The notes beneath the pieces are model-generated. The model was given only the letters and a program-made list of their open reading frames with translations, made no database searches and had not been told where the DNA came from. From Paramoeba atlantica (lineage: Eukaryota; Protista; Discosea), in NCBI GenBank assembly GCA_977017575.1, contig CDRNVI010000167.1, positions 62,001 to 126,000 of the forward strand: DNA of 64,000 nt, in the 5' to 3' direction. The stretch's first letter is position 1, and every line of letters begins with the position of its first letter. Of this stretch, positions 13,330 to 39,800 are shown in pieces. Both the position numbers and the translations under genes were made by a program.

Positions 13330-13590
13330 AATAAAAAAAATAATAAAATAAATAAAATAAATAAAATAAATAAAATAAATAAAATAAATAAAATAAATAA
13401 AATAAATAAAATAAATAAAATAAATAAAATAAATAAAATAAATAAAATAAATAAAATAAATAAAATAAATAAAATAAATAAAATAAATAAAATAAATAAA
13501 ATAAATAAAATAAATAAAATAAATAAAATAAATAAAATAAATAAAATAAATAAAATAAATAAAATAAATAAAATAAATAAAATAAATAAA
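13330..13590. repeat. Intronic 9-bp tandem repeat (AAATAAATA)n
   Basis: Nearly 30 near-perfect copies directly downstream of the last visible LRR exon of copy 2. Confidence 0.85.
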
Positions 13591-13591
13591 C

Positions 13592-14925
13592 ATCCAAGTC
13601 AAATGAAAGTTGTCCAAATTCAGTAGGCAAAGACTCCGTGAAGTTATTAGAAATGATGTCTAATAATATTATGAAAAGGAGAGGGAGAGAGGAGAGAGGA
13701 GAGAGGAGAGAGGAGAGAGAGAGAGAGAGAGAGAGAAAAGAAAGAGAAAGAGAGAGAAAAGTGAGAGAGAAAAGTGAGAGAAAGAAAGAAAAGAAAAAAA
13801 TCATCAGAACAGAATAATTTATTCAAAAAATAATCTGAAGAAAAAAAAGAAAAAAAAAGAAAAAAAAAAGAAAAAAAAAAAAGAAAAGAAAAACATTTGA
13901 AGGAGATCAAAGAGTTGTGCAAATTCAACAGGCATTGTCTCTGAAAAGAAATTCCCTCCCAGTGATCTGATAAAATCAAAAATAATTTCAATAAAAATGA
14001 AAGAAATGAAAAGAAATGAAAGAAAGAAAGAAAATGAAAGAAAAATGGGAAAGAAAGAAAGAAAAATAAAGAAAAAAGAAAAAAGAAAAAAAAAAGAAAG
14101 AAAAAGAAAAAAGAAAAAAGATAAAAAAGAAAAAAAAGAAAAAAAGAAAAAAAGAAAAAAAGAAAAAGAAAAAAAGAAAAAGAAAAAAAAAGAAAAAAAA
14201 AGAAAAAGAAAAAATTACAAATCAGTTAAAGAATGAAGTTTTGAAATTTTGTCCAAGATTTTTTCTCCTTTCAGTTGATTGACTCCTAAAAACCTTTTGG
14301 AAAAGAAAGAAAGAAAAGAGAAGAGAAGAGAAGAAAAGAGAAGAAAAGAGAAGAAAAGAGAAGAAAAGAAAAGAAAAGAAAAGAGAAGAGAAGAAAAGAG
14401 AAGAAAAGAGAAGAAGAGAAGAGAAGAGAAGAAGAGAAGAGAAGAGAAAAAGAAAGGAAAGGAAAAGACAGGAAAGGAAAAGAAAGAAAAGAGAGAAAAT
14501 GATAAAATTATTAAAAGAATAATAAAAGAAAGAAAAAAAATAAAATAAAAAGAAAAATAAAAATAAAAATAAAAATAAAAATAAAAATAAATAAAAATAA
14601 AAAATAAAAAATAAAAAATAAAAAATAAAAAATAAAAAATAAAAAATAAAAAATAAAAAATAAAAAAACATGATTTGGACATGATGAAGATTTTCAATTT
14701 CTGATGGAACAGTCCCTCTCAAAGTATTGTCAGAAAGATCTCTAGAAAGAGAAGAGAGAGAAGAGAGAGAGGGAGAGAGGGAGAGAAAAGGGGAGAGAGA
14801 GAGAAAAGGAAGGGAGGGAGAGAGAAAAGGAGGGGAGAGAGAGAAAAGGGGAGAGAAAGAAGAAAGAAAAAGTTAAAAGTTAAAAGAAAAGAAAAAAGAG
14901 AAAAGAGAAAAGAAAGAAAAAGAAA

Positions 14926-14957
<32 letters not shown>

Positions 14958-15084
14958 GAAAAAGAAAAAAGAAAAAAGAAAAAAAAGAAAAAAAAGAAAA
15001 AAAAGAAAAAGAAACAAATAAAGAGAAGAAAGAACTCCAATTTCGGTTGGGATTGTCCCACTGAGATAGTTGTCCGCCAAAAGC
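13592..15084 (-). pseudogene. LRR-domain gene, copy 2 (paralogue of 142-1522)
   Basis: Same five exons in the same order: 15016-15084 (LLADNYLSGTIPTEIGVLSSLY), 14670-14741, 14219-14293, 13895-13965 (71 nt, frameshift), 13592-13659 (68 nt, frameshift). Confidence 0.7.
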
Positions 15085-18042
15085 CTTTTTTAACAAATAG
15101 AAGAGAAAGAGAGAAGAGAGAAGAGAGAAGAGAGAGAAGAGAGAGAAGAGAGAAGAGAGAAGAGAGAGAGAGAAAGAGAAAGTGGAAGAGAAAGTGGAAG
15201 AGAAAGTGGAAGAGAAAGTGGAAGAGAAAGTGGAAGAGAAAGCGGAAGAGAAAGCGGAAGAGAAAGCGGAAGAGAAAGAGAAAGAGAAAGAGAGAGAGAA
15301 AGAGGAGAAGAGAGAAAGAGAGAGAAGAGAAGGAGAAAATGAGGAATGAGAGAATGAGAAAGAGAGAAGAAGAAGAAGAGAGAAAGAAAAAGGAAAGAGA
15401 AAAGAAAGAGAAAAAGGAAAGGGAATAAAAGAAAAAAAGTATTATTTCAAAGGTTTTTTCTTTTTAAAAAAGAAAGAATTAAAAAAAAAGATTAAAGAAA
15501 AAGAAAAAGAAAAAGAAAAAGAAAAGAGAAAAAGAAAAGAGAAAAAGAAAAGAGAAAAAAAAAAGAGAAAAAAAAAAGAGAAAAGAAAAGAAAAGAAAAG
15601 GAAACCGACCACCCCACAGAAAGGAAAGGAAGGGAAAGGAAAGGAAGGGAAAGGAAAGGAAGGGAAAGGAAAGGAAGGGAAAAGTAAAAAAGAGAAAAAG
15701 AGAAAGAGAGAAAGAGAGAAAGAGAGAAAGAGAGAAAGAGAGAAAGAGAGAAGGGGGGAAAGTAGCGAAAAAACAGAGAGAGAAAAAAAAAAAGAGAGAA
15801 AAGACGCTGGATCCAAAAATTTGGAACATCCAAAAAAGAAGAAAATGTACTCAGGGACAAAAAAAAGAAGAAAGAAAAAGAGGGAAAAGAGGGAAAAGAG
15901 GGAAAAGAGGGAAAAGAGGGAAAAGAAAAGAGGAAAAGACAGGAGAAAAAAAGAAGATAGAGGTTTTCGGACCCGAAATAGGGGTCCGTCATTTGGCTGC
16001 TATTTTTTTTCTCATTTTTGGTTCCTCTTTCTTGGTTTCTTCTCTCAGTCCTTTTTTTTTCTCTCTTTTTTTTTTTTTCTCTCCAAAAAAGAGAAATGGG
16101 CGTAAATCAGAGATTTATTTCAGGGTTGAAAGTCAACAAACAAGAACGAAAGTTTCAATGGTAAAAGCAAAAGCAAAGCAAAAAGCAGAAAACAAAGAAA
16201 AGGAGTGAAAGCAGGCACAGGCTGGCTGCAACGCTAAGAAGAAGAAAGAGCAACAAAGGATTCAACGCGTGTGTTGCCAAAAGAGACACAAAGAAGGGAA
16301 AAAAATGAATTCGAGAGCTAAATCTAGCGCGGCAGAATGAGATAAATTCCTATATTAGGGAATTCCTTGTTCGTTTCCGTTTGGTCTCTTCTTCGGGGAC
16401 CTCTTGTTCAAAAAACAAAATCGCCAACTCTCTCTCTCTCTCTCTCTCTCTCTTTTGTGTGGGGTACAAAGAATTCAGCAAAATCTTCAAAAAATCGTGG
16501 GGTGTTTGTTTTTTTCTTATATTTCTCTAATTTTCTTCTTCTTACTTTCTTTCTTTTCTTTTCTTATTTCTTTTCTTTCTTTTTTAGATTGTGGTGAGAG
16601 ACTAAATCAAGAGTTGTTTTTGACCTTTGGTTATGCTCTTTGATCCAGAACAAAAGAATCTTTGTTGATGGATCACTATTACATTGGTGAGGGATATTGG
16701 TGAATCTTGTTGTGTGTTGCTTTTTTCATTGAACATGAGAAAAAAGAAGAACTTTTTTTGATGGTGGTTTTGCGCACACAATGTTAACATTCTTTTCTTT
16801 TGTGGCCAATTTATCGTTGTGTTTGCTGTGTTTTTTTTTTTTCTTTTCCCCTTGTTTCATTTTTGTTGTTTTTTGAGTGGGTTTTCTTTTCTCTTTCCCT
16901 CTTTCCCTCTTTCTTTTTCCTTTTCTTTTTTTCTTTCTATTGATAAACTCTTTTCAGGGGAAATGTGGAAAAGACCATTCAAGATTTCTTTTTTTCTCTT
17001 TACTCTTTTTTATTCTTTTATTCTTTTCTTTCTACTTTTCTTTTTCTTCTTTTTCTTTTTCTCCCTTTTGATGGTGTTCTTCAAAAATTGTGAATACTAA
17101 TTTTTCTTTCTTTTCTTTCTCTAACCTCTCGAGATGGTCCCTAATGAGATATTAAAATAATCTGGCTGCATGTTCAGAGACCTCTGTTTTGTTTCGTGCT
17201 CCACTCCATTGCGGAAAGAAGAGAAAGAAGGGGGTTAAGTTTGGCAAGAAATTTGGAGAATATGGCTATTTTTTGACTTCTTTTAACCTCCTTCTTCTTG
17301 GCGATGATGAATTAATTAATATATTAAGAGGTACCATGAATTTTGCTTGAACTCAGAAGTGGAGTCTATTCCCACCCAACAATTCACAAGGAGAGGGAGT
17401 TTGCCACTCTTGTTACATCACCACAGGTTTCTTTTTTTCCCCTCTTTATTTTGTTATTTTGTTGTTTTGGTGTTTTTGTCAAGTAGTTTAATTGTTTGTT
17501 TTTGTGTTTTTGTATTTTGTTTTTATTTTGTTTTCTTCTTCACTTACAAACCTTCTTCTTAGAGTTTTGAGTTGTAAACTTTTGGTGTTTCGTTTCTTCA
17601 CTGTGTAGTGTTCAGGTTTTATTTTGGTATAAATGTGATTGTTTTGATTGTTGTTGCTATTGTTATTGCTGGATGTTATTGATTGTTTCAAAAGAGCCAA
17701 GAGAAGTGTTTTTTGAGAGCTTGTTGTTGGTTGTCGGTCGGTTGTTGGGTTGTTGGTTGGTTGTTCAGGACAATCCAAGCCAATCCAGACAAGACAACCC
17801 AAAAGAGAACCCAAGAATATGGTGGTATCCTAGAAACTAGAGTTTGTTTGCTAGAAAGAAAAGTGTTAATAGAGGTTGGTTTTCTTTTTCTTTTTTCTTT
17901 TCCCTTTATTTCTTTGATATTTTAGTATCATGTTTTTTTCTCTTTTCCCCTTCTTTTTCTCTTTCTCTCTCTTTTTCTCTTGTTTTTGTTTTTTGTTTTT
18001 TCTTTCATTCCCTTTTTTCTCTTTTTTTCATCATGCAATATA

Positions 18043-20800: not shown

Positions 20801-22392
20801 GTAACACACAACCTCCCCCCCTCCCCTGCACACACCACAAAAGTCTCTATCTTTTTGTTGGTTCTTTTTCTTTTTTTCTTTTTCTTCTTTTCTTTTTCTC
20901 TTTCTCTTTTTCTTTTTTTTCTTTTTCTTTTTCTTTTCTTTTTTCTTTTTTCTTTTTTTTTCTCCTTTTTTTTCTCCTTTTTTTTCTCCCTCTTTTCTTT
21001 TTCTCTTTTTCTTTTTCTTTCTTTTTTCTCCTTTTCCTCTTTCTTTTTTCTTTTTTTTTCTCTTTTCTTTTTCTTTCTTTTCATTTTCTTTTTTTTTTTT
21101 CTTTTTCTGTTAGTTAGGTGACAATTTTTGAGTTTTATGAACAAATTAAAAGTTTTTTTGATTTGTTCAAACAACTTTTTTTCTTCTTATGATACAATTC
21201 TTGCTGAGAGACTTGAGACCACACATCCAAGGTTCTTTTTTCCCTTGCTTGATCTGCTTTCAATCAGAGGTTTTTCCTTCTCTTCCTCTTGTTTCTTTCT
21301 TATCTTTCTCCTTTTTCTCCCTTTTTTACTTTCCCTTTTTCTTTTTTATCTCTTTTGTTTTCCCCCCTCTTTTCCTCCTTTCTCTTTTTCCTCTTCCTTC
21401 CTTCCCTCCTTTCTTTCCCCTTTGTTTTTTTTAAAATTCATTGACTTTCCTTTTGAATGAAGGGAGCTTCTTTATTTTGTGTTTTGTTGTTCCTGGAGTA
21501 TTGTGCATTGTTTGTGGGGGGGGAATTGTTGTTTGTTGTTTTGTTGTTTGTTATTTGTTATTTGTTGGCAGTTGTTTATAGGTGGTTGTTTCTTGGGTGG
21601 ATATTTGGGTTATGGTTATTTGGTTTTGTTGAATACCTGTGGTGGAGGGAGGGGTTTTGGTGTTTTGTTGTGATGATGATGTTTTTTTTTGTTTTTTGTT
21701 TTTTTTAATCAAAAAAACTAACTTTTTTTCTTTTCTTTTCTTTTAAAAGGGATAATTGCTTTCCTCTTTGTATAATATTTCCACTTTGTACTTGGCTTTT
21801 AATAATTTATTTGTGATTAACATTCAAGATCAAGAAAGGCAAAACAAATTGAAAAGATTGTAAAGAGTGTTATAAACAAGTTAAAAAGTTCTTTTGATTT
21901 GTTCAAACAACCCTTTTCTCTTTGATGTTATAAGAGGATTAAACCTGGTGGACCCTTGAGAATTTCAATTATTTCTTCAATTATTTTATGACTCACCCCA
22001 GTTCAATGTTGGGAACCTTTGATTTGGCATTCCTTTGTCTTCTGAGAAAGAAGAGCTTCAAGAGAAATGGAACCTGACTCAGATGGTTAAGCTGTGAGAC
22101 TATCAGCTTACTAGGGTTCTTTTTTCTTTTTTCTTTATCATTAGATTTTTTTTGTTTGTTTCCATTTTATTTCCCCTATTTCCTTTATCTTACTCTTCTG
22201 ATCTTTTCTTTTTGCCTCCTTTTTCTCATTTTTTTTGACCAGAGAACTCTTTTTTTTTGTTGAAACAATCAACTTATTGGATAACCATAAAAAGAACTTT
22301 CATTCTTGAATGGATGAAGAAGTGTTATTTTGGTTCTTTTCCTATCAGTGGTGATCCAAGCAATGCTCAAATGACCTCAAGGAAGAAAACTT

Positions 22393-22750: not shown

Positions 22751-23946
22751 AAGGATTGAAAGGAAACAAAAAAAACAAAAAAAACAAAGGATAAAAAAAA
22801 TTGTGAAACCCCAAAATCTTTTTTTTGTGGCTAAAAAAAGAGTGTTGCACCTTCCCCACTCTAGTTTTCTGTTTTTGTTCTTGCCATCATCTCTTTTCTT
22901 TTCTCCTTACTTCTCTTTTTTTCTCCCTTCTTTTCTCCCTTTTTTTTCTTCCCTTTTTTTTCTTTCTTTTTGTTTCTTTTCCTTTCTCTTTTTCCTTTTC
23001 TCTTTTTTTCTCTTCTTTCATAGGTCACTGTGATCATGATTGGGTTAAATATGTTGCTTCAAGTTGTGGTTTCTTTTTCTTTCTTTTTTTTCTTTCTTTT
23101 TCTTTCTTTTTTTTCTTTCTTTTTTTTTCTTTCTTTTTTTGTTTTCTTTCTTTTTTTCTTTTTTTCTTTTTCCTTTTCCTGTTTTTTTGTGCTTTCTTTT
23201 TCTTATTTCTTCTTTTCTTTGGTGGGTTACTTCTCTTTTTTGTTACCAGAGAGCCAGAGGGTTGATGGAGAATCTGAGAGTTAGGTTTTTTTTGTTTTCT
23301 TGAATGAAATTCAAAAAAAAAGATATCCCCCTCCAAAAGGGAACAAGAGTGAGGTGAGGGATTGAATAATTACTGATGTGAGTTTTTTGGACTGTTTTTT
23401 CTTGCTTGTGTTTGTTGGAACTTGTGTGATCTATTCTTTTTTTTCTTCAAAAAAGGTTTTTTTTGTTATGTTTGCTTTTATTATTATTTGGTTTTCTTTT
23501 GTTGGTTGGTTGAGATGTTGTTGGGAGAGTTGTTTAAAAGTTTGGATCCTCAACTTATCTTTGAGAGAGAATTACTGTTTGGGTTATTTTTATGGATTGT
23601 TGTTTCTTTCTTTATTCTAGGTTTTTTGGTTGTGTCACATATATTATTTAAAACTGTTTGGAATGATTTCACCCTGAAAGTGTTTGTTGGCAAAGAGTCT
23701 GTGTGAATGTTGCTGTTGTTGTTTTGTTTGATTCTCTCCAATAGTGTACTTTGTTTGGAATATTGTTGTTGTTATTTTGTTATTTTATTATTGTTGTTAT
23801 TTATTGTTGTTATGATTATTTTTTTCTCAGCCTGGCTCACTCTCTTGTCGATATTATTTTTTATTTTTATATCCATTTCCATTTCCTTTTTCCTTTTTGT
23901 TTTTATGTGACATCTTGTTTTTTTTTTGTTGTGAAGCTTTCTTGGA

Positions 23947-26900
23947 TGAAGCAATCCTTTGTAGATTTTGTTTTATTTCTGAGGTTTCAAAGAAGTACAG
24001 TTGAGAAACTGGGAAATCAACAAGTGAGAGAGTAGAGAGGAGAAAACACAGTGACAGGATGTTGACAACAATGAACTGCAATCAGTTGAACTGAATTTAA
24101 CAAGGATTCAAATAAAGGTGTTATATATATTTATAATATTTCATATTTGGATATTTAATTATTTACACCCCCCCTTGCAAGCAGAGTTTTGAGCGCAGCT
24201 TTGTCAGTTCTGAACAAAATTCAAAGTTCTTACAGGGAAAATCCACCCATTATTGATCAGTCTGCCCACCAATAACCTTTTTGAGGCTTCTTTGCCTTGA
24301 GGTAATCTTTCAACTCTTTTGTACCTCCCAGGTGTTCTTTCTCCCACCACTTATGTCATTTTCTTCCAGTAGGTGGTTGGATTTCCATACAATATTGTTG
24401 ATAACCATCAAATTCTCTTTCTGAGATAATTCTATATCTCAGACTTCTTCATCCATCTCCTGGTGGGAGTTCTTTCTCCTTTATCAGGTTTTGTTCCTTT
24501 TCAATTTCAACCCTTTCATATTAATTCACTTCCATGAACAGGTTGTGGAAGAATCCATCTTGTTTTGAGATTCCTTAATCGATATATTTGAGCTGAAACA
24601 ACCTCAGTTATCATATGGACATCACCTTGTGTCCTTGGATTGAATTTTTGGTTAAATTTCTTCCTTTTTTCATGATTTAGAAGAAGGACTCAGTCTCCAA
24701 CCGATAGAATTTGAGTTCTTTGATGAGCATTATAGTCATCAACTCTTTGTTCCTTGGAATCTCTTCATTTTTCATTTACCAGTTGAAAGATTTCTAACAT
24801 CTTATCCCTCACATTAGCCACATATTCATCTGAAGTAACCAATTTTGGGTTTGATGTTCCCAGTGTAACATTGATTGGATATGTTGGTATTCGACCAAAT
24901 TGTAACATGAAAGGTTTTTGTTTTGTTACAAAATGAACTTGGGTATTGTAAGCAAATTCCACCAATTGGAAGGAGCAAATCCCACAGTCCCTTTGATATT
25001 TCTGGACATAAAGCCCTCATCATGTTTTTAACAGGTGAATGAATTGTTCCCACTTTGCCATTTCCTTTGTGGTTATAGAGGGAGACCTTTGCATGGTGTG
25101 TTCCTCAGATTTGTGTCAATTCCACAAAGAGTTCTTTCTGGGCCCCTCCATCAGTCACTATTTCCGGTGGCATTGAATGGATTGTAACATATTTCAAGAG
25201 GCATTGTGCCATCTCTTTTGTGATGACAGCTTTCAGTGGAAATAATGAAAAGTACCCTGTGAAGGCATCCACAATTGATAAGATATGGGTATATGTATTA
25301 TTGAGACAATAATGTCACCTTGTTTCCAATAATTTCTGAATGTCTTTACAAAACTCAGGTATTCTCTAATTAAGATCAAATTTCTCATTCTTTGACAAAA
25401 TTGATCCTTCATATTGCTCCAGTATTGTTCTTGGTCCTTTATGATCCATTGTTTTTCTGAATCATTCTGATTCTCAGATCCAGTGTGGCCAGCACCAGTA
25501 TCTGACAGTTTTGCTCCTTCTGGCTCCTTATTTATAAGAGGTTGTATTTCAGGCACTGTATGAACTCTGGTAGGTTCACCTGGTTGTGTACTTGACCTAA
25601 ATTCATCCTCACTTCCAGAGTCAGAAATGTCATTACACTCAGTCTTGCTGGGAATTGTCTGAAGCTAACCCATCACACTGCCCAGTGTCTTACATGAAGC
25701 TGACCCAACAGCTATCCCAGATAGTCATCCTTGAGAGAGTCCCCTGCTCCTTCCTTGAGCAGATTGGCCACCAAGCTGACCCATGCTTTCTGTGCACTGA
25801 CCCATTTTAGCCAATAACTCCTTTCCATCTCTGGTGGACTCATCTACCCTATGACAGGTTTTTGAGAGAGAACAGAGCTTCAATATTGCCATTTTTTGTT
25901 TGTTAAAATGTTGTTTTGTTTTCCACATTTTTAACTCCCAGTCTCTCCAGGACTTCTTAATTGGAGTTTGAGCATCTTCCTCTTGATAGGATACATGATG
26001 TGCTCAACTGAGTGTATCAGGAATAACCAGTGTTTTCCCAGGTTGGTGTAGAATTTGACTTGCAACTGCTGCTATTTCCAGCAGCCACCCACAGATAAGT
26101 TTGCTTCTTGTTTGCTTACTGTGGAGTTGCACAGTTTGACTGTTGACTCTGGTGCTCACTAAAAATCACCACATCTCTTCCCATAATGAATTCCTTAAAC
26201 TTGTTAATTGCCCAGTAAGCCTCATAACATTCTTGTTCAGAATTTGTATATTTTTATTGTGTTTTGGCAAAGCCAGACTTGTGAAAGCGACTATTTTGTG
26301 CTTTTTTGGTATTCCTGACCTTTTTGGTGCTGGTTTATCAAGAGGATCATCAGGGTGTTGTGTCAGTATTGAATCATAACCATTTTTTGATGTGTCCACA
26401 TGAATATAGAATGTTTTTCTGAAATTTGGCATTGGTATTCTTGCAATTGTTTCCTTCATTTCCTGAAATTCATTATCTGCCTTCTTAACCCATTCAAATA
26501 ATGGTTGTAGCAGTAATTCTCGAAGGTGGTATGTTTTTTGAGAACAATTGTGGATGAATCTCCTACACCAACTAACCAATCCTAAGAGTGATTGTAATTC
26601 CTTTTGATTGGTTGGTTGTGGAAAATGTTTTATGGCCTTGACTTTCTTGTCATTAGCCAAAATTCCATCCTTTGTTGCTGTATATCCAAGTAATGTGAAA
26701 GATCTTTCACCACTTTACTCAGGTTAATTTGCAACTTATTTTCCTTTAATCTATCCAGCACTTTCTCTACTAGTGATTGAATATGTTTCTCAAAGGTTTT
26801 TGAGAAGATAACTATGTCATCAACATAATTAATACAGATATATATCATTGCAAGCCAGCAAGTATTGTATCTATAAAATGTTGCTGTGTTGCCAGAGCAT

Positions 26901-29380
26901 TTGTTAATCCAAATGGCATTGAATTCCATTCCCACAGCCTGAATTGTGAACAAAAGCCATTTTTCCCTTGTCCTCCTCTTGGATTGGGATTGACTAAAAT
27001 GCTGCAGTCATATCCAATGTTGAAAAGAATGAAGATTCACCCAGGTATAACAACACATCATTAATTTTTTTGGTATTAGATAACTCCATTTCTTAGTCCT
27101 TTCATTTAATTCTCTGTAATCCACACAGAATCAGACTTTTTCATTTGCTTTTTTGCCACTAACATGGTGAATTTGATGATTGGATGACTCTTCTCTTGGC
27201 CATCTCTTGGATTTGATTCTCTTCAATTGTCCTTTGTATAATAAGCTCATCTAAAAGGCTTTTGAGTTTCATCTTTAAGTTCAATTTTGAACTCTGTTGC
27301 ATCTGTATGCATGATTGGAGCATTGCTAAGTATGTCCCACATTTCTTTGTATTTTTCAAAGAGTTTACAGAGTTGAATCATTTGATCAAGATTGAGATCA
27401 CTAAGAGTGAGGTCAGTTTTCTTTGTGAACTCCTCATATTCCTCTGGAATCATCTTTTCATCTTCTTCCAGATTTTTCTGACCATCTCTCAACAGGATAT
27501 TTGCTAAAGAACATTGATGCTATTTCTTCTGAGAATCCCCAACCTCCTTGATTGCACATGTGTTTTGCCATTCCATGGCAGTCCTCTTGAGGCTGTAGTT
27601 CTGGAGTGACCAATTTATCTTTATACATTCTTTCATCTGACTTCTTTTGGTGAAGTTTTACTGGTCTTTTATCAAGAGGTTTTGCAATGGTTTGTTCTGC
27701 ATTCTTTTCTGTAACATTAATGTGTTTTACAACATGTAGACCCTTTTTCAAGTGAGAATGAGGTATTTCCAACATTCATAATCTCAATTCAAGTAGTGTA
27801 GATATATTGTCTCACATGATCAAATCTCAGTTGTAGAGCTTTTTTTTTCTGTCTGACCTCAACTGCTAAGATTGATCTAGGATCCAATCTTGTTTGTGTA
27901 GTTATTTTTAATTCTCCAATCTCTCTGGGATTGGGAAGGAGTGAACTTCTTCAGTTGGCATTATTGATGATTTGTCAGCTAAGGAAATGTAATTTCCTTT
28001 GTAATGGTCTCCAAAGTTTGGGAATTGCTTTATTCAGGAATGTTCTTGCCACAACATCTATCCTGCAAGCCCTAGAATCACAAAGTGCTTGTGTAGTAAA
28101 TATCATTGACCATGCAAGGTATGTTGAACAGTTTATTATTTATTTGGTATATTTTAGGATTCAAGTCTCTTACTAGGTTGCCAATATGGATTGTGAAGCC
28201 ATTTTCACTCATCTTGACCACCATCTTGTCTTGTTGCCAAGTATTTTGAGTAAATTCCTTTTTACTCTTAAAAGAATTGACAAACCATTTGCTTTTTCTT
28301 TAAGTTCTTCAAGAGTTAATATCCCACATCCAAGGAGTTCACAAGTAAAGTATTTTCCAACTGAAATCCCCACATCCTCTCTTTCTTGGAACTCTTTTGT
28401 TCCAATTAACAAGACTCATATGTTTATATTTCCTTGCTGCAGCATCACCATATCTATCCACAGTGCTCATCCAGGGATGAAAGAAAACAGGTTATTGGTT
28501 CACTCCTCTTCAATTTTTCTTTGGTTCTTTAATACTCATCTGTTCCCCCCCTAACAGACACTTTATTTAGACCTTGGAAGATTGGATTTTTGAATTCTCA
28601 CATTGCTTCCTTCACATAGATTTCCTGAAAGGGAGTTTCTCTTATCTTCAAGAACAGGTGCAAATATTCTGTAGTTACCACCTGAAATTCTTGATTAGTA
28701 ACTTTTTTATCAGGTACTCAAAAAAGATCAAACTTCTGCTGTTCCATAAGGACAACTTTCTCACCAAAGAATCTATTAAGGGTACACAACAAATTCAAAG
28801 GTAATCCATCCAACTTTTGGCCTAATGACTTTCAATTGCCCTTGCAAACTTGATTTGTTTTCTGAACTCAAGTATGTTTGGTCAAATATCTTGTTTAATA
28901 CTCTTTTTTTAGATGCAAAATTGAGAAGCTTGGACTGGGTTTTGGAAATTCACATCTTTAATTACCAATTTCCAATGTTGTTTCTAAGATTTGTAATTTG
29001 ATTCTTTCATCTTTAAAAACTCCTTCTTTATTCACACCAACTCTTCATTTTGTACAACCAGGAAATGAATTGCCTTCACCAATTGTTCTGCTTGGAGTTT
29101 TCTCTAAGCAATTTCTCAAGATCAAATGCTTCTTCTATTGGTTATTCAAATTGAAGCATTACCAAGGTAGATTTTATTTTACTTCTAAGGTTTCAATAGT
29201 TTAAAGAAGTACAATTGAAAACTGGGAAAATCAAGAAGTGGAAAAGTGAAGAAAAGAAAATGTAGTAATAAGAATATTAATGATAATGAACTTTAATTAA
29301 TTGAATTGAATTCAACAAGAATTTAAATAAAGATGTTATATATATTTATAATATTTCATATTTGAATATTTTTTTAAACT
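23947..29380 (-). mobile_element. Ty3/Gypsy LTR retrotransposon family 1, ~5.4 kb, degenerate
   Basis: ~220-bp LTRs at 23947-24166 (3-prime) and ~29152-29380 (5-prime), with a G-run PPT at 24167-24174. RT (FSTLDMTAAF, NYVDDIVIFS) at ~26650-27200, RNase H (FYIHVDTSKNG) at ~26150-26450, integrase (PEIVTDGG, NGKVG, WDLLLP..EFAYNT) at ~24750-25300, possible chromo-like tail at ~24290-24440. Confidence 0.88.
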
Positions 29381-29681
29381 TAATTAAGATTTAAAGTTTG
29401 AATAAAAAACTTTTTTATATGATAAAATAATATTTTGAAAAGTTTTTAATTTAAAAAGTAGTGAAAAAGATATTAGTTTTAGATTTTATTTTGAAGAAGA
29501 AATATAAAAGATTAATACAAAAGAAATGATGTTAAAAGAGAAAAAATAAAAAAAAATTTAAACTAATCTCATTAACTTTCTTATTTTTTTGTTTTTTTAA
29601 AGATGAGTATGATAGTTTAGTTGTTCTTTTCTTCAATTTCTCATTTTTGAAGTCTCAAGTTCAATTCTTTTAATTTTTCAA

Positions 29682-29785
29682 TTTTCCAATTTTCCAATTT
29701 TCCAATTTTCCAATTTTCCAATTTTCTAATTTTCCAATTTTCTAATTTTCCAATTTTCCAATTTTCCAATTTTCCAATTTTTCAG
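29682..29785. repeat. 8-bp tandem repeat (TTTTCCAA)n at the left edge of the satellite
   Basis: About 13 copies, some TTTTCTAA variants, followed by a few (TTTTTTAG) units. Confidence 0.85.
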
Positions 29786-29817
29786 TTTTTTAGTTTTTTA
29801 GTTTTTTAGTTTTTTTT

Positions 29818-31330
29818 ATAAATAAGTTAAATAAATTGTAAAATTGTGTAAAAAGTACAATTTTATTTGTAACTTGTTTGGAAATGAACTTTTAAACATC
29901 AAAAACTAAATAACAATTGAGAAAAAATGAAAATAGAAAATAATACAAATAAACATTGAAAAAAGTGGTTGGAAAATAATCAAAAACAAAAGGAAATATG
30001 TTTTTTTTTTTGTAAATAAATCAAATAAATTGTAAAATTGTGTAAAAAGTACAATTTTATTTGTAACTTGTCTGGAAATGAACTTTTAAACATCAAAAAC
30101 TAAATAACAATTGAGAAAAAATGAAAATAATACAAATATTGAATTATACATTGAAAAAAGTGATTGGGAAATAATCAAAAACAAAGGGAAATATATTTTT
30201 TTTTTTGTAAATAAATCAAATAAATTGTAAAATTGAGTAAAATATTCAATTTTATTTGTAACTTGTTTGGAAATGAACTTTTAAACATCAAAAATTGAAT
30301 AATAATTGAGAAAAAATGAAAATAATACAAATAGACATTGAAAAAAGTGGTTGGGAAATGATCAAAAACAAAGGGAAATATGTTTTTTTTTTTGTAAATA
30401 AGTCAAATAGATTGTAAAATTGTGTAAAAAATACAATTTTATTTGTAACTTGTCTGGAAATGAACTTTTAAACATCAAAAACTAAATAACAATTGAGAAA
30501 AAATGAAAATAGAAAATAATACAAATAAACATTGAAAAAAGTGGTTGGGAAATAATCAAAAACAAAGGGAAATATGTTTTTTTTTTTGTAAATAAGTCAA
30601 ATAAATTGTAAAATTGTGTAAAAAGTACAATTTTATTTGTAACTTGTCTGGAAATGAACTTTTAAACATCAAAAACTAAATAACAATTGAGAAAAAATGA
30701 AAATAATACAAATATTGAATTATACATTGAAAAAAGTGATTGGGAAATAATCAAAAACAAAGGGAAATATATTTTTTTTTTTGTAAATAAATCAAATAAA
30801 TTGTAAAATTGAGTAAAATATTCAATTTTATTTGTAACTTGTTTGGAAATGAACTTTTAAACATCAAAAATTGAATAATAATTGAGAAAAAATGAAAATA
30901 ATACAAATAGACATTGAAAAAAGTGGTTGGGAAATGATCAAAAACAAAGGGAAATATGTTTTTTTTTTTGTAAATAAGTCAAATAGATTGTAAAATTGTG
31001 TAAAAAATACAATTTTATTTGTAACTTGTCTGGAAATGAACTTTTAAACATCAAAAACTAAATAACAATTGAGAAAAAATGAAAATAGAAAATAATACAA
31101 ATAAATATTGAAAAAAGTGGTTGGGAAATAATCAAAAACAAAGGGAAATATGTTTTTTTTTTTGTAAATAAGTCAAATAAATTGTAAAATTGTGTAAAAA
31201 GTACAATTTTATTTGTAACTTGTTTGGAAATGAACTTTTAAACATCAAAAACTAAATAACAATTGAGAAAAAATGAAAATAATACAAATATTGAATTATA
31301 CATTGAAAAAAGTGATTGGGAAATAATCAA
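29818..31330. repeat. AT-rich satellite: ~190-bp monomers in a 576-bp trimeric higher-order repeat
   Basis: Anchor TTGTAAAATTG at 29836, 30030, 30225, 30412, 30606, 30801, 30988, 31182. Spacings are 194, 195, 187, 194, 195, 187, 194. Confidence 0.95.
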
Positions 31331-31678
31331 TAATAAAAAAATGAAAAATCAAAAAAAAAAAAAAAAGAAATAATCTTAAAAATTAATTTCTTTAAATTTA
31401 AATTTTTTACTTAAAAAAAAAATCATAAAATAAATTAATTAAAGAAATTTTTTTTTTTTAATTTAAATATTAAAAATATTATTTATTAAAATAAAGTGTA
31501 ATTTAGATATTTAAGAATATACTTAAATTAAATTGTTATAATCAAGTAAAATTAACCCACTTCAATACTAATTTAATAATTAAAAGTTTTAATATATTTT
31601 TTTATTTTTTATTTCAATCTTTTTCAAAATTCTTTTTTTCTCATCAACCTTAATAGATCTAATAATCTTCTTTATAAT

Positions 31679-32900
31679 GTGGCCTATTCCTTGGTTTTTT
31701 TGAAGGGATTATTCTCTACAAAAATATCAAAAAAACCTTCTTTTTTTGGCTGCTTTTTGGTTGTGATGGTTTTAGTGAAAAAGAAATAAAGAAAGAAAAT
31801 TGTTTCATTGCTGGGAAAGGTTGTCTCCAAACCTCTCTCTTTCTCAAATATAAAATGGATTGTTGAAACAAAGCTTTCAAAGAACCTACTTGCTAAGTTG
31901 ATTGAGTTTTTGAAAAGGCAAGAGGATATAACGAAACTGTGGAATCTTAAATAGCCAAGAGGGTTCACTGAGAAGATGATCACTTTCTGCCTTTTCAAGA
32001 ACCTTAAAGGGGTTGGTTATTTATAGATTGAAAAGAATGTTAAATTTACTTTTGCTTTCTATACAAAGTGTTTGGCCCACAACACAAAGTTGATCCACTA
32101 TCTTCTTCTTCATTGAGCAGTTCCTTAGATCAAAAATGAGGAGCAACAAAGTTGGAATGAACAAACAAAGAATTTTTCCAAAAGAAGGGGATTGAAGAAA
32201 GTAAATCTTTCTCTTAATTCAGCAAACTTCCAATTATCCAAAAAACAGTCCACTTCTAAAAAGAGTTAAACTTGGAGTTACAAGGTAAATGGCTTTGCTC
32301 AAAGGTTTCAATTTCTTTTTGATAGAAATAAGATTGTTCAAAGGATTTGAGGTGGATATAGTCTGAAAGTGTATGATGGGGAGTGGGTAAAACTTGTTAA
32401 ATAGGACTTGATTGATAATTTTAAAAGGTTTATATTATTGTTAATACTCATTATGAAACAGCTAACAAAACTTTTAAAGCAATAAATGGTGAACATGATG
32501 TCAAGTTTTATACCCCAGTTGTCAAACCTTGAGGAGGGAAAAGAAAAGTTGATCCCCATCTTTCTCCTGATTTATCTCAAAGAGCAGCAGTTCTAACTGA
32601 AGAACAAGAGAAGTAGAACAAAAATGTGAATCATCTCTGAACTCAAGCAGAAACTCCTTTTGGTTCAGTATAAAATAGATGGAAGGTACTGGAGGAGATA
32701 TTTTGGGAGGATGAAAAATAACAAATGTACATTGTATACTTGGCAGTTGGAGTCCACAACTACCTTAAAAGAAATAAAAAAAAATAAATTTCATTTTTTT
32801 CTCTTTTTTCTTACAACCAAAAAAGTAGTTTCAAAAAAGGGGAATTTTTGATGTTTTTCTAAAGAATAATTCTTTCAAAAAAAACCAGGGAATAGGCCAC
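31679..32900 (+). mobile_element. PHIS-superfamily (PIF/Harbinger/ISL2EU-like) DNA transposon with dead DDE transposase
   Basis: ~86-bp imperfect TIRs (GTGGCCTATTCC...; 31679-31764 and 32813-32900) with 3-bp TSD AAT. One reading frame with nonsense codons and one frameshift gives LSLNSANF..TWSYKVNG..QRF..D..IVQRI*GGYSLKVYDG and T.EQEK*NKNVNHL*TQAETPFGSV*NRWKVL...IVYLAVGVHNY, which fits a DDE_Tnp_4-type C-terminus. Confidence 0.75.
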
Positions 32901-33052
32901 AATAGAAAATCTTATTACACTTTTCAACTAGTAGTTTTTTGCTTGCTCATACTTTTTTCTCTACTTTTGGTTTTTTTTCTCAACAAAACTTTCTAACATT
33001 TCACCAAATGCAACTCTTTTAAGAAACCACTTAATAATATTATTTGAAATAA

Positions 33053-33477
33053 TTTGGGTTGGCGCCTGTAGTTTAGTTGTAAATTCAACTATGTCCAACC
33101 CTAGGGGGGGCGAGTTCAAATCCCAGTTTTTCAATATTATAGAAAATTTTTCTGGTGCTGTAGAGTGATTTGATTGGAGTGAGGAGCTTTTGAAGAAGTG
33201 TGAAAATCAGAACAGGTTACATCTCAGCCCTGTCTGCTAAAAAGTTGAGGATAAATTCCCTTGGAAGGAGCTTTGGATTATTCTCCCTTCTGATGTGCAT
33301 CCTCCAGCCTGAACTTGCAGAAGTTCTAAAGTTCAACATAAAGACCAACTGAACTAAGCTGAAGTTTAAAACTTCACCTCTTGTTAGAGGTTAAAAACAA
33401 ACATAATTTAATGTAATTCAAATGGCTTAGATTAAGAACTACTAATTGAATAAAGTCTGCCTCAAAAAAAAAAAAAA
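33053..33477 (+). mobile_element. tRNA-head SINE 1 (~425 bp)
   Basis: A-box-like TAGTTTAGTTG and B-box-like GAGTTCAAATCC, poly(A) tail, 16-bp TSD ATATTATTTGAAATAA (33037-33052, 33478-33493). Confidence 0.85.
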
Positions 33478-33517
33478 ATATTATTTGAAATAAATATAAG
33501 AAAAATTATTAACCCAT

Positions 33518-36500
33518 CCAGTACAGCTTGTACTAGAAAGTAAATATTATTAATTATAATCATTTTATTCTTAAACCTCCTCTTAAACTGAACTTTCTTT
33601 ATAAGGAAGTTTTAATTTAAATCTAATAGTTTCATCACCCATTTTTATAACTTGGAATTTTCAATAATCCATTCTTCACTAATTGTTATTAGTTGCTTCA
33701 ATCTTGAATCTTAGTTTTTATTAAATATAGCTTCCATTTCATCTTTTTCAAAGTAACTTATTGTTGTTGTAATCACATTTGATCTTTTATTGAATTTATG
33801 ATACACATAAGTATACTTCACTTTGATAAATTTACTCTTAACAATATTTTTAATCTCAGATAGAATCTCATTAAATTCAAAATTATTAATTGACTTCATT
33901 TTAGATGCTACCTTAGTTAAAATTTTACAATCTCTCACTATCTCTATGTGTTGTCCAAAACCAATAACTTATTGTAGACCAACTAAGCATCTTAAAAACT
34001 CACCCAAGTTATTTAAACTTAATGGAATTGTTTCAAATCTATTTTTAACTTTCAAACCAATAATCACATCTCCAAATTCTCCAATACAAAGATTTACATG
34101 TTTAGAGTCATTATAAAACACTTGCAAAGTAAAGTATTTGAACTTTAGTTATTTCACTTTTTTTTTACCTTTGGAAGAAATTTTTCTTATAGTCTAAAGT
34201 TTGAAGATCATTTTGTTTGTTTTAGCAATTTCATCAAAAATTTTAATAATAAAGCTTGGAAACTTAGATTCTTCTACATATACAATAAGCCACAAGCTCA
34301 ATAGGGCTATACTCACTACAGATGCATTAGCCTTCTTTAAATACTAATTTATGAATTCACACACAAAGTCAGCACTCTCCCACCCAGGAATCTTTAAAAC
34401 AAAGCATTTCTTCTTAATAGTTTTTAAAATCACCTTAGCTTTTAAACATTCTTTGAGAAGGTGCACCTTTGACTCTTTGGCTTTCCTATACAGCTGACAA
34501 AGTAAACTCACAAATGTGAAATGGATAATCTTATCCATAGTTGAGAGGCTCCTCAAGAAGAACTTCAGAAGATTTTGCTTAATTTGGAGTCTTTGTGAAA
34601 GAGATAAATTATAGATTACATATTTTAAGCAGCCATCCTCTACATAAAAATTCTTCACTCCCATAAAAATGTTCTAAGATAGAAGAGAGAAAGATCTCTT
34701 GGTTTTGGAGCTCATTCTTATTTATTTTAAGATAACCCTATTAGCTTCTAAAGCATCAATTCTTATAGCTCCAATAGACAATAGATTCTTATAATAATCT
34801 TAGAGAAGCTTTCTTGATACTAGTAGAGCTCAGTTGAACAGAATAGGATGTTTAACTTAGGGTTTTTCAAAGAACAGGGAATAAAGAGAAGTCATTACAT
34901 AGAAGTTTAGATTTGCATATGCATCTAAGGCTGAATGAATGGCTTTCCACATCTTTGAGAAGATAGCTTTTGAGATAAGCTTAAATTTTATCAAATAATC
35001 CATACAAGGAATAAGATAAATATTAATCATCTAAACTCTCTCATTGAAGCTGCCTTTCTTTTGTTTAATTGCTGTTCCAACCTTTTGTATTTTCTTGATC
35101 ACCTCTTCTCAATCTTTAATTGGGTTTATTCTTTAAGAAATTATAATTCCCAAGTATATAGTCTTTTCTCTCAAATAATTAGCAAGGCATTTCAACTCAA
35201 GGGTCTTTTTCAATTGATAATACAAAACATTTATTGTAGTTGAGTTTAGCTTTAGTTCTTTGTTCATATTCTTGGAAGATTAAAATTAAGGAATTTATAG
35301 ATTGGATCTTGTGAAGGAAAAGGGCTAAATCATCCATAAACCCAGCAAGCTTCTTAAAGTCATCTCCATTGTTTTGAACAATAGAAGTGAAATGAAGCAG
35401 CTTTATTATACACCAGTCCAACTCTTGATGACTTTCTTTTGTATCTTATCATTCAATCCTACAGTTGAAAGCCATATATCTAACTCTTGCAGTACTTTAA
35501 ATATAACTTCAAAGGCTTAGAGTGAAGTATTCAACCTAATCAACAATTTTATAAAAGCTTTGTGGTTAATATAGTCATAGGTCTTACAAAAGTCAGTTTG
35601 GAGGATGATCATATCTTTGCCCTTTACCACAGTTTCCATAAACCCATCATGTATCAATTCCACTATATTATCAATAGACCTTCCAGCAAACATAGCATTT
35701 TGTTCAAGGAAAATCACCTCTCTAGCACTTTCCATCAATTACTTGATCTAATATCTCATTACAATCCAATAATCAGAATTAATAATACTTATTGGTTGAA
35801 ATTGGTCACGATAAGAAATATTCTCAATCTTGGGTAGCAACATAAGTTGACTCTCCCCAAATGATTTAAGAAAATCTATTAATTCTCCAGCTCTTTAGAT
35901 AAGTTCACACCACATATCACACAATTGTTCACTTGTCACTTTGTAGAGAGTAAAGGGAATACCATCTGGGCCAGCACTTGAATTATTACACCATTGCAGC
36001 AGTTTATCAACCTTGACCCCATCAACAATATGATAATCAACCTTAAGAAACTAAGGTTTATAGTTTTCAATCAACTTCTAAAGAAAGTCCTTGTTGTACA
36101 GCCTCACTGAGCTTAAAAGATTCCCTCAAAATTCTTTAATTGCTTTCTAGACCATACCATTATCTCTGGAAATGACCCCATCCACAACAATTCCTTTAAC
36201 CCTTAGGGATGATCTCACTTTAGGCCTCACAGAGTGATTGTTAATAAAGATCCCCAACTGTTCTTCAATACATTCAATCTTCTTGAATGCTGCAGAAATC
36301 ATTCTAAGGATTATTCCTCTCCTCCACAACTTCCCTTTCTTCAGACTCTTCCAACCAAAAGAGGTTTGATCCAACAGACCCATTTCAAGGGAAGAGTATG
36401 GCCTCTGAACAGTAGATTTTCTAAAAATGTGAGAATTGCAAAGGGATCTTACAAGAGAATGGATCTTTCACAGTTTTCTAAACAATGCTATCTCAATGTT

Positions 36501-36565
36501 TCTCTCTCTCCAGTAGGGAACTAATTCCCAAGCTGTAATCTTGAACTTAATCAAAGTACTGATTG
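33518..36565 (-). mobile_element. L1/Tx1-type LINE family 1, copy B (5-prime truncated, heavily C>T/G>A mutated)
   Basis: Colinear with copy A (~53700-56789) from the post-endonuclease region through RT, zinc finger and RNase H to the 3-prime UTR. Confidence 0.9.
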
Positions 36566-36574
36566 CTTTTTCAT

Positions 36575-36846
36575 AGAAGATTGAACAGCCTTGTCAAACT
36601 TCAGTTCTACATAATAGAGTCTGCAAGAGAGGAGTGAGGTTTTCCTCCAATTGAGGCTAACCAGGTTTTAGAGGGGTGAAGTACTTTTTCAATCACAAAA
36701 ATGGCTTGAGAAGGAATCTTCAACCTCTTTAAAATGTGAATCAGAGCATCACAGTTTATATAATCATAAGCCTTGCAGAAGTCAGTTTGGAAGAGAGTAA
36801 GATTTTGTTCATTGGCCAAAGCCTTATAAAAGGCATCATAAATAGA
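36575..36846 (-). mobile_element. LINE family 2, RT fragment (continuation of 62109-64000)
   Basis: SIYDAFYKALANEQNLTLFQTDFCKAYDYINCDAL...V*QGCSI. It resumes close to where the 62109 segment stops (AMFKGRS). Confidence 0.7.
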
Positions 36847-39800
36847 TGTTGGTGAATTCTGCCTATTTTCCCTGACTGATTTTGGATTATTAGTGAGAAA
36901 GTTCTAGTTTTTGTGATTTTTCCCTCCTTTTCTTAAGGTGGTGACTTTCAAACCTCTTCTTTTGTGACTTCTTTTGTTTTGTTTCATCCCTTTGTGACTT
37001 TTGAGGATATTTGAGACCTAAATAACATTTGGAAACTTGTTTCTCTTTTCTTGGCTCTGTTTTGGTCAATTTTTGAGAAAAAGAACCTTGATTTGAAGCA
37101 CTTGTGTTTTGGAATCGATTTTTGCATTGATTTTGTGCCTCATTCTCTTTCCTTGTTAATTTTCAAGGTTATTTAAAGCTTCAAACAAATTTTTGGAAAT
37201 TTATCTTGATTTTTGACCTTGTTTTGTTGGAATTTCTAGAAATTTCCTCTCTTTGGGTGAATTCTGTTCCAAGGCTGTTTTCTTGTTGGTTTTTCCCTCT
37301 TTGTTTGTTTTTTATTGATTCTCAAGGTGATTCAAAGCTTTTGACAAATTTTTAGAATTCAATTCTCTCTTTTGACTTTGTTTTGGTGGAATCTCTGAAA
37401 AAAGAAAAATACTCTTATTTGAAACAATTGAGCTTCAAAGTTGTTTTCTTTTGATTTTGCTTTTCAACCTTGCTTTTTGACGATTACTAGAACAATTCAA
37501 AGTCCCTTGTGAATTTTCAGAATTTGATTCTCTCTCTGGACCTTATTTTGAATTGGATTCCCCTTTTAATCTTGTTCTTGTGGAATTTGCAAAAAGACTT
37601 ATTTGAATCAATTGTGTTTCAGACATGTGTTCTCAACAGTTTTCTCTTTTATTTTGTTATGGGCAATTCTTGAAGTGTTTGGAAGCTTTTGGTGACCTTT
37701 CAGAAATTTATTCCTTGTTTTAACCTTGTTCTGGTGGAATTTCTAAAAGATTTCTCTCTTTGAGTTCTTGTGTTTTGAAAGATTTCTCTCTTTGAGCCTT
37801 TTGTGTTTTGGAATTGTTTTTGGACAGTTTCTTTTCCCTTTCTTGTTTGTTGGTGACTCTTGAGGTGTTTGGGAGTTACCAAGTGGCTTTTCAGAAGGTT
37901 ATCCTTTATTCTGATCTTGTTCTAGCAAAATTTTCAAAGAACCTCTGTTTTAGACAATTTGAGACAATTATGTTTGGACTTGTTTTCTCTAGTGATTTCT
38001 TTCTCTTTATTTTGTCCCCTAGCAATCTCCAAGACATTTTAAACAATCCTTGTAATTTTTAGAAATTTATCCTCCTTTCTAGGTCTGTTCTCATGGAAAT
38101 TCAAAAACTTCCCCACAATGATTAGATCTTGTTTTGAACTGTTCTTTTAAGTGGTTTTTTCTTCCCTTCTCTTGCTTTTCAATGATTCTAGTGGCAACCT
38201 TAAGACTCTTGATAATTTCTGAAGTTCTATTCCCTTTTTGAAGTTGTTTGAGCAATATTTTGGAAACACCTCATTTTGGTTGGTTCTGAGCAAGGTCATC
38301 CAGATCAGTTCTATTCTGTGGTTTTCTTTCCTCTTATTTTGTTCTTAGTTGATCTTTAAAACATCTTGAACAATCCTCATAATTTTTGGAAATTTACCTA
38401 CTGTTTTGTGCCCTGTTTACAGAATTTTTAAGAACCACACATTGACTGGATCATCCTCTGAATTGCTCTGCTCAGTAGCTTTATTGTTTTTATTTTGTTC
38501 TTTGATGATTCTATTAGCATTAAAAGGTTTTCAACAAATTTAAGAAGTTTGTTTCCCTCTTTTGAGCCTGTTTGAGTGACACTCCAGAAATACCCTGTTT
38601 GGCCAATTTTTAAGTTAATTAAATTTGAAGTTATTTCCTTTAGTGGTCTTTTGGTTCTCTGCTTACTCCTTTGGCAATTTGCAAAACATTGTTACTCCTT
38701 TTGATGATTTCTTAAGAAATCCTTTTGATGATTTCTTAAGAAATTACCCTCAATCTCAGTTTTGTTTTGGTGGTATTTTGGAAAGTTTTGTTTGTGTGAC
38801 TATAAGGATTCTTGATTTTTCTTTTGTGACCTGTTGATTTTGAGTGTGTTCTCCCCTTCATCCTTGAGTTGAATTTGTGGACAATCTTTCTTGTAGAATT
38901 TTGTGGGACAGGAAAGACCTTTCTAAGATCATATTCTTTCTGAATCATTTTTGAGCCAATTCTTGGATTCTCAAATATTTCATCTGATTTCCTAAGTTTG
39001 CAATTGAATCTTGCATGGTTTGAGTCAGTATTGGTGACAAATCACTTCTAAATTTATTGAAGTTCTCTCTTGGATTGGACTTTCTTTAGAAACAATCCCT
39101 TTATTGGTTATTCTGGACTCTCATTGTTCTATGGGCTCTAAGTTTCAGATATTCTCTTGTATTTTCTGCCAGAGTGACTTCCTGTTTTTGTATTTGGATT
39201 ACTGAGTTCTTTTGTGGTTTTGTTTGCTCTTTACCCAAGCGAAACAATGAGACACTCCTCTCTTTTGAACTCTTTTCCATTGTTTTAGAGTGGAAGTTTT
39301 GGAATTTCTCACTGTTTTTCAGTCCTGAAACCTTACAGTTCCATCCTGCTTGGCAATTTTCGAGTTTCTGGCATCTTGTTCCTTTTTTCTTTTGAATTGA
39401 GTGACAACATAAGACATTTTTGAATTATTGCTGTTGGATAATCATTTGTTTGCTGGGATTTTTTAGGATTATTTTTTTCTTGATTCCTTTGATTCCTTCT
39501 GTGTTGTTTCTAGTCACTGAACTTTCTTGTATTTCTCTGATTTGTTCATTATTGGAACTGTTTGTGACAAAGTCCTTTCGAACTCTTTCTATTTTTGGAT
39601 TTTGTGGATTTTTGAGCATCTCAGAAGTCTAGTTTTCTTCAATCAGTATTCATTTTGGCAAAATCCCTTGAATCTTTGTAGTTTAATTCCTTTGCCTGGA
39701 TTGAGGAATTGAATTTTCTAGAAATCTTCTTTGAAATTACTAGCTTATTATATAGAGAATCCTTTGTTTTGATTTCTTTCTTGAGTTACCTTGTCTAACT

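Follow-up and report, generated by a model that had tools for sequence, protein, structure and literature searches.

We analysed a stretch of 64,000 nucleotides from the Paramoeba atlantica assembly GCA_977017575.1 (contig CDRNVI010000167.1, positions 62,001 to 126,000 of the forward strand; hereafter the window), in which a Gypsy retrotransposon with two long terminal repeats (LTR1 and LTR2), an AT-rich satellite array and a decayed retroelement copy (copy B) lie one after the other. A preliminary description of this DNA had proposed position-dependent hypermutation of the C>T and G>A type, similar to fungal repeat-induced point mutation (RIP), around the AT-rich block. We found that the decay is real, far beyond chance and still going on, and that it is not RIP. 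Coordinates are positions in the window unless a contig is named (C167 being the window's own contig and other C numbers other contigs of the assembly); positions 29784–29819 lie outside the analysis, the local alignments ending at 29783 or those columns being unused in any claim. The features on which the argument rests are the following.

9215–31337: multi-copy block of at least 22 kb with the satellite at its end; at least nine occurrences in the assembly, with inverted pairs on C167 and C184.
23947–24166, minus strand: LTR1, the 3′ LTR of the Gypsy element; little decayed, with a polypurine tract immediately inside.
24167–29150, minus strand: Gypsy interior with many stops; 36.5% GC, observed/expected (o/e) CpG ratio 0.04, matches to RVT_1 and RNase H, and the lowest inter-locus divergence in the block.
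29151–29377, minus strand: LTR2, the 5′ LTR of the Gypsy element, with an inner part (29151–29238) and an outer part (29239–29335) on the AT-block side.
29378–29783: AT-rich flank with an 8-bp microsatellite; 18% GC.
29820–31337: satellite of 194-bp monomers, three of which make up a higher-order unit of 582 bp; 19% GC, with longer arrays in other block copies.
31338–31677: host AT DNA; 10.6% GC.
33518–36565, minus strand: retroelement copy B (the preliminary description's "LINE copy B", a doubtful label for this copy and copy A alike); 31% GC, graded G/C loss, with a mirror copy B′ at C167:137113–139574 and 145505–146121.
53705–56789, plus strand: retroelement copy A, the reference for B; it stands for at least 12 copies, all 81–82% identical to B.

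The RVT_1 and RNase H matches of the Gypsy element lie at 26.2–26.95 kb on the minus strand, and together with the polypurine tract just inside 24166 they identify LTR1 as the 3′ LTR and LTR2 as the 5′ LTR. Alignment of the two (23947–24166 with 29151–29377) revealed 24 changes from G/C to A/T in LTR2, six in the reverse direction and nine transversions; among the 67 sites inferred to have been G/C ancestrally, losses number 24 in LTR2 and six in LTR1 (Fisher p = 3 × 10−4; binomial p = 0.0014). A distant relative, L019, agreed with LTR1 at eight of nine informative sites, the remaining one being a C>T change in LTR1. The bias that the preliminary description had counted between 24043–24120 and 29257–29335 was reproduced on recounting (15–16 against 3), and the 14-mers it had quoted for the two retroelement copies, located at 54856–54869 (plus strand) and 35400–35413 (minus strand), do carry four non-CpG differences of the C>T type.

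Copies B and B′ were polarised with copy A as outgroup, and majority states among copies were used solely for counting. Over 3.1 kb, the branch shared by B and B′ differs from A by 283 changes of the C>T type, 60 in the opposite direction (mostly A's own decay) and 14 transversions, and the private changes have the same character (112 of 123 in B and 78 of 92 in B′ being C>T or G>A). All 15 new stops of B in the open frames of A fall at glutamine (10) or tryptophan (5) codons. Overall, C>T and G>A changes, occurring on both strands, account for 299 of the 349 polarised changes (86%).

The picture of a single Gypsy insertion beside a unique AT block, as first described, proved incomplete. LTR1, searched against the whole assembly, matched at nine places, each with an LTR1 at 97–100% identity and, 5.2 kb off, an LTR2-type partner at 78–80%. 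The block at 9.2–31.3 kb, always with the satellite at its end, is present on seven contigs:

C167: two copies, inverted, the second at 148826–160962.
C184: two copies, inverted, at 30001–52447 and 114675–137121.
C144, C141, C182, C177 and C149: further copies.

Block loci are about 1% divergent from one another, the arms of one contig diverge by 0.04–0.07% (arms of 10–22 kb being 99.93–99.96% identical), and the LTR2 region aligns at 95–99% identity among block copies. Since decay of the LTR2 type is common to all of them, LTR2 decayed before the block spread: the Gypsy element, its decayed LTR and the satellite form one block that was copied to at least nine places after the LTR had decayed. 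Later changes are also seen, as with a C>T at 29298 in LTR2 that is private to the C167 lineage. The locus also serves as a natural clock: the two LTRs of a single insertion, the mirrored arms and the nine or more copies provide three time layers of polarised mutations.

Because the block exists in many copies, several lineages were available for polarising later mutations. Across four block lineages, the 134 singleton changes comprised 109 C>T, 15 T>C and 10 transversions. In the youngest layer, all 10 arm-to-arm differences polarised by other loci were C>T, and all 34 differences between the arms at 31338–33052 were transitions. Old and young mutation layers share the same spectrum. The satellite itself, with only four higher-order units in register, was uninformative in this respect.

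The rate per lineage-site was 7.6% at CpG, and 0.36%, 0.65% and 0.32% at CpA, CpC and CpT, respectively, so that CpG decays 12–20 times faster. The effect of the 5′ base stayed within about 2.7-fold (0.28–0.76%, lowest after C), ACA being hit as often as TCN, and context counts in the block lineages and in B/B′ revealed no preference for CpA, TpC or WRC among the C>T changes. Within B and B′, where no CpG remains, each trinucleotide was hit at 4–17%. Non-CpG contexts supply the majority of events, as the preliminary description had stated, and its argument that CpG-only decay is insufficient is upheld by a one-way C>T process on both strands and in all contexts. The strands are affected alike: 16 of 43 G and 8 of 22 C were lost in the LTR comparison, and B carries 136 C>T and 147 G>A changes, with a modest per-site strand effect (p = 0.006) that does not flip across the core.

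RIP is known from Neurospora and other ascomycetes, and RIP-like, CpG-targeted hypermutation from basidiomycetes (PMC3318451, PMC12543289). Homology-triggered bursts of this kind, for instance premeiotic ones that spill over from the tandem satellite into flanking DNA, would account for one-way C>T change on both strands that is heavier by a tandem array, and the graded part of the decay, being old and shared, could be read as one past episode. The long near-identical duplicates that RIP destroys have nevertheless survived in the arms and in the block copies, nearly untouched over 22 kb in at least nine places; LTR2 was hit four times harder than LTR1; CpG is the sole dinucleotide target; and decay is slow, gradual and ongoing in unique and single-copy positions. 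The substrate index that had been suggested as a check, (CpA+TpG)/(ApC+GpT), is 1.09–1.63 in every part, above the RIP threshold (<1.03), and searches of the assembly with PF00145 and TIGR00675 returned no RID/DIM-2 homologue, the window's class of contigs apparently holding a partial genome. The decay is not triggered by duplication and is therefore not RIP; a RIP-like mechanism, as first suggested for what had rightly been taken for a non-ascomycete genome, is rejected, and even a single episode of such bursts appears highly improbable.

An artefact of assembly, or of basecalling at modified bases, is in principle conceivable for singleton differences between near-identical copies. It would have to have arisen alike in independently assembled block copies, among which the LTR2 region retains the identity given above, and in the 283 changes common to B and B′; it would also have to create 15 stops at glutamine and tryptophan codons and to reproduce one spectrum in old and young layers. 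Four sequencing runs of one study contain 54–72% of the words of the stretch, and this, together with the identity among block copies, makes such an artefact implausible as far as alignments and shared words can tell.

We then consider position relative to the satellite core. The outer 97 nt of LTR2, on the AT-block side, lost 20 of 39 G/C sites (51%), versus 3 of 25 (12%) for the inner 88 nt (p = 0.0015). Transversions and indels followed the opposite trend (5 outer versus 9 inner; Fisher p = 0.0026), so that age does not explain the excess, which concerns C>T changes specifically. On the other side of the core, G/C loss on the shared branch of B fell from 43.5% at 33.5–34.0 kb to 13.2% at 36.0–36.5 kb (Spearman p = 2.5 × 10−13), the odds of loss being multiplied by 0.55 per kb from the core (p = 1.6 × 10−12); copy A itself has decayed evenly along its length, with some 7% of G/C sites lost. 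The position dependence that had been proposed thus holds for the old changes and fails for those after duplication, which have no gradient. We regard a local C>T excess beside the satellite core as real, with moderate support.

Several candidate causes of, or additions to, this gradient were set aside. Inter-locus C>T changes rise toward the core from 7% to 15% of G/C sites (p = 0.006), and other substitutions rise too (p = 0.02); with gene conversion active here, this recent rise was not counted as support for a local field and is read as uneven homogenisation. Local duplex stability, taken as GC content within 5–50 bp on either side, had no effect on C loss (p = 0.25–0.77). A strand flip across the core in the style of a replication origin was not seen, strand effects being modest at most, and a gradient of cDNA editing along the retroelement is ruled out by strand symmetry.

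Activity of gene conversion follows from two features of the region. Inter-locus divergence across the Gypsy element (23947–29377) is U-shaped for every substitution type, with its minimum at 25.4–27.8 kb, and arm identity drops steeply inward at both palindromes, the differences being nearly all transitions. Between C184:59400–61300 and C184:104100–106000, divergence grows from 0 to 14% within 2 kb; between 31338–36565 of the window and C167:137113–147867, identity falls inward from 99.9% through 98% and 95% to 91%. The middle of the Gypsy element looks as if it had been homogenised most recently among the block copies.

The organism behind these repeats bears on what can be concluded from gene searches. 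The repeat families of the window have 122 matches, every one of them on a contig numbered C137 or higher (C137–C248). The housekeeping genes searched, tandem arrays of histones and 10 of 11 tubulins lie on C1–C100, in allelic pairs, and the kinetoplastid genes of C1–C100 are intron-free. The C137+ class has its own, more canonical H3 (C196:45803–46183), an H4-like gene (C201) and one tubulin (C169). The assembly encodes JBP1 (with the J-binding domain) and JBP2 (with SNF2), which mark a kinetoplastid-type organism; no link was drawn between base J and the decay, as JBP1 and JBP2 lie on the other contig class and modify thymine. The window probably comes from a second, only partly represented genome, apart from the contigs with kinetoplastid genes; alternatively, one organism would keep its repeats in a compartment of their own. 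The assembly may contain two organisms. Gene loci have a CpG o/e of 0.96–0.99, a value that does not serve as a within-organism control, since the loci in question are on the contigs with kinetoplastid genes. Statements that an enzyme is missing from this assembly are unsafe until both contig classes are assigned to organisms.

The reading that we favour, to which we give a probability of about one half, is a slow, continuing, cytosine-specific decay of marked repeat DNA with a local excess by the satellite core. Repeats would be eroded in place, C changing to T equally on both strands, with the 12–20-fold advantage of CpG and no other context preference, and the chemistry would most likely be deamination, within silenced repeat chromatin, of cytosines that carry a methyl group or another mark. 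Erosion would have gone furthest in and directly beside the AT-rich satellite core, where host DNA, at 10–13% GC, is close to its predicted equilibrium, and elements landing by the core would lose more cytosines on the side that faces it. Most of the graded loss would have preceded the copying of the block (Gypsy, satellite and retroelement B) to at least nine places, and the rate of decay since then would have been roughly constant. Dense cytosine modification or a chromatin-linked process, which the preliminary description had offered as one possibility, is in this sense kept as the best reading, no enzyme having been found in the assembly; its "undescribed genome defence" was not borne out.

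Base composition is consistent with decay of marked cytosine. In the window's contig class, CpG o/e passes from 0.44–0.63 in elements with long open frames to 0.01–0.07 in broken ones, and TG/CA o/e reaches 1.39, so that CpG depletion grows with element decay and is accompanied by an excess of TpG/CpA. The per-site ratio of GC-to-AT over AT-to-GC change is about 13, which predicts an equilibrium of 7–9% GC; host AT stretches have 10.6–12.8%. As the rates predict approximately the GC content seen in host AT DNA, the AT block can be explained as the end state of the same decay, into which younger elements were inserted. As a separate observation, a Copia element at C144:398816–404368 (L034:8816–10000 with L035:1–4368), with frames of 887, 568 and 395 aa and a CpG o/e of 0.44–0.48, shows the least decay of all elements observed on contigs of this class.

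Several observations weigh against the favoured reading, and most of them also speak for its main rival. In that rival there is no local field: a uniform, strongly AT-biased neutral spectrum acts throughout the repeat compartment, and the position effect is an age mosaic from gene conversion, in which LTR1 with the Gypsy interior and parts of B were overwritten by younger copies (ectopically or through cDNA) and the old parts face the AT block by chance. The profile of B is step-like, with three plateaus at about 0.43, 0.24 and 0.13; its least decayed, far 566 bp contain neither transversions nor indels (P = 0.025), in keeping with a mosaic from conversion; and changes after the B/B′ split are flat along B. 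The positional signal is carried by two elements only, LTR2 and B, and both would have their old end toward the core by chance with p = 0.25. The U-shaped divergence of the Gypsy element for all substitution types and the identity gradients between arms, which speak for active conversion, point the same way. Apart from position, the ratio of non-CpG transitions to transversions, about 30, is purer than usual for methylation-driven decay, and searches of the assembly, where the window's genome is apparently partial, found no C5-methyltransferase (PF00145, TIGR00675), SRA domain or MBD domain; this partial state makes the absence of a DNA methyltransferase (DNMT) weak evidence.

The age mosaic encounters difficulties of its own. 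Only the outer part of the LTR has the C>T excess; transversions and indels are at least as frequent in the inner part, whose state is therefore not simply one of younger age. The assembly contains no further copy of this Gypsy family that could have acted as donor. A-type copies are all at most 82% identical to B, with no partial match of high identity that would mark recent conversion, and transversions and indels in B are equally dense in the proximal and middle tracts, although C>T differs 1.8-fold between them. The suggestion that the bias might track only copy age therefore does not hold for LTR2, given the C>T-specific excess there; copy B fits a conversion age mosaic as well, and tests on B reject neither the age-mosaic model nor the uniform model. 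We consider the age mosaic possible and, on balance, doubtful.

A different agent has also to be weighed, namely a DNA cytosine deaminase of an unrecognised family, recruited to satellite and repeat chromatin as genome defence without prior methylation. It would suit the purity of the C>T spectrum (the 86% overall and the 34 transitions and 10 C>T changes of the youngest layers), the equal attack on both strands and all contexts, and the failure to find a DNMT in the assembly. The 12–20-fold preference for CpG is, by contrast, the textbook sign of 5-methylcytosine (5mC) and not of known deaminases, and the rate is slow. Searches with profiles PF08210, PF18778, PF14421, PF14428 and PF14441 gave no match to APOBEC_N, NAD1, LmjF365940 (LmjF36.5940-type), DddA-like or OTT_1508 deaminases, several controls also giving none in this partial genome; the deaminase-fold genes present resemble dCMP deaminase, ADAT2 and ADAT3 and lie on the C1–C100 class. 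UDG is present in the assembly. Such a deaminase seems quite unlikely to us. Also unlikely is the broader proposition of a C-to-T mutator in a non-fungal protist that works without canonical DNMT or APOBEC, is aimed at repeat and satellite chromatin and not at duplicates, strikes every cytosine (CpG fastest), has its greatest strength at satellite cores and in this way builds the cores of 10–20% GC.

Should the position effect of the favoured decay reflect a true local field, AT-rich satellite cores, which are candidate centromeres, could be made and widened through decay specific to cytosine, in addition to the loss of recombination. The locus would then also represent a protist system that ties repeat silencing to mutagenesis outside the fungi.

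Further elements of the locus, outside the argument above, are these.

31678–32909, plus strand: Harbinger/PHIS-type element of 1.23 kb (the "PHIS transposase" of the preliminary description), bounded by terminal inverted repeats some 95 bp long; 32% GC, with 88–91% identity to four other copies.
33055–33478: young SINE-like insertion of 422 bp; 37% GC, with about 40 copies at 94–98% identity; missing from the mirror arm.
1–2100, 7300–8300, 12300–15900, 20850–21110 and 23070–23220: polypurine/polypyrimidine tracts, strand-skewed.

The Harbinger-type element was located by its DNA copies and inverted ends, and the corresponding places elsewhere match DDE_Tnp_4; a Pfam search of the open frames in 31.3–33.6 kb gave no transposase match. 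A sister copy at C164:127382–128604 retains a 408-aa open frame that matches DDE_Tnp_4, a profile with 123 matches in the assembly whose families are divided between the two contig classes. All of the roughly 40 copies of the SINE-like element lie on contigs C137 and above, and its presence in one palindrome arm only indicates recent activity. The 3.1 kb common to copies A and B has no reverse transcriptase or endonuclease match in Pfam; downstream of A there is an open frame with an integrase zinc domain (58167–59060, in the region 52962–59060), and a weak RVT_1 fragment adjoins B (36610–36903). Further B-type copies occur at C184:89567–91657, C141:6830–8920 and C182:161561–163031. Much of the outer part of the block consists of very long, low-complexity polypurine/polypyrimidine tracts that are strongly strand-skewed, and the inverted block pairs surround locus-specific inner regions of 55–60 kb.

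Compared with known systems, the locus shares with retroelement cDNA editing by AID/APOBEC enzymes the C>T and G>A changes and the stops at tryptophan and glutamine codons. Unlike in that system, the strands are equal here, the TC, CC and WRC contexts are not favoured, the mutations arose after integration and duplication, and searches of the assembly yielded no APOBEC-like gene. RIP likewise turns repeats into AT-rich blocks by C>T and G>A change, with stops at glutamine and tryptophan codons, and RIP leakage into flanks is known; the present decay differs in having no duplication trigger, no CpA or TCG preference and no burst, in a non-fungal genome, with no RID found in the assembly.

Regional centromeres of the Schizosaccharomyces pombe type are AT-rich, with degenerate retroelements and inverted repeats, and trypanosome centromeres contain AT-rich repeats. 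The arrangement of inverted outer repeats around specific inner regions resembles a regional centromere in layout: an AT-rich array lies between decayed retroelements, near-identical inverted arms recur between loci, and inner regions are locus-specific. This resemblance is one of sequence layout alone, and a core-linked C>T gradient is not an established feature of AT-rich regional centromeres or pericentromeres.

The decay of methylated transposons offers the closest parallel to the reading that we favour. CpG decay is well known from vertebrate and plant repeats. The present case departs from it in that the per-site rate of non-CpG C>T change exceeds that of T>C about 10-fold, transversions are very few, the effect peaks beside a satellite core, and no DNMT, SRA or MBD was found in the assembly. 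Among amoebozoans, Acanthamoeba has repressive 5mC on repeats, made by DNMT1/DNMT3 (PMC12344493). As in methylated-transposon decay, the changes at the present locus are one-way C>T on both strands, CpG decays fastest, CpG o/e falls, and the process is slow, takes place in situ and is ongoing.

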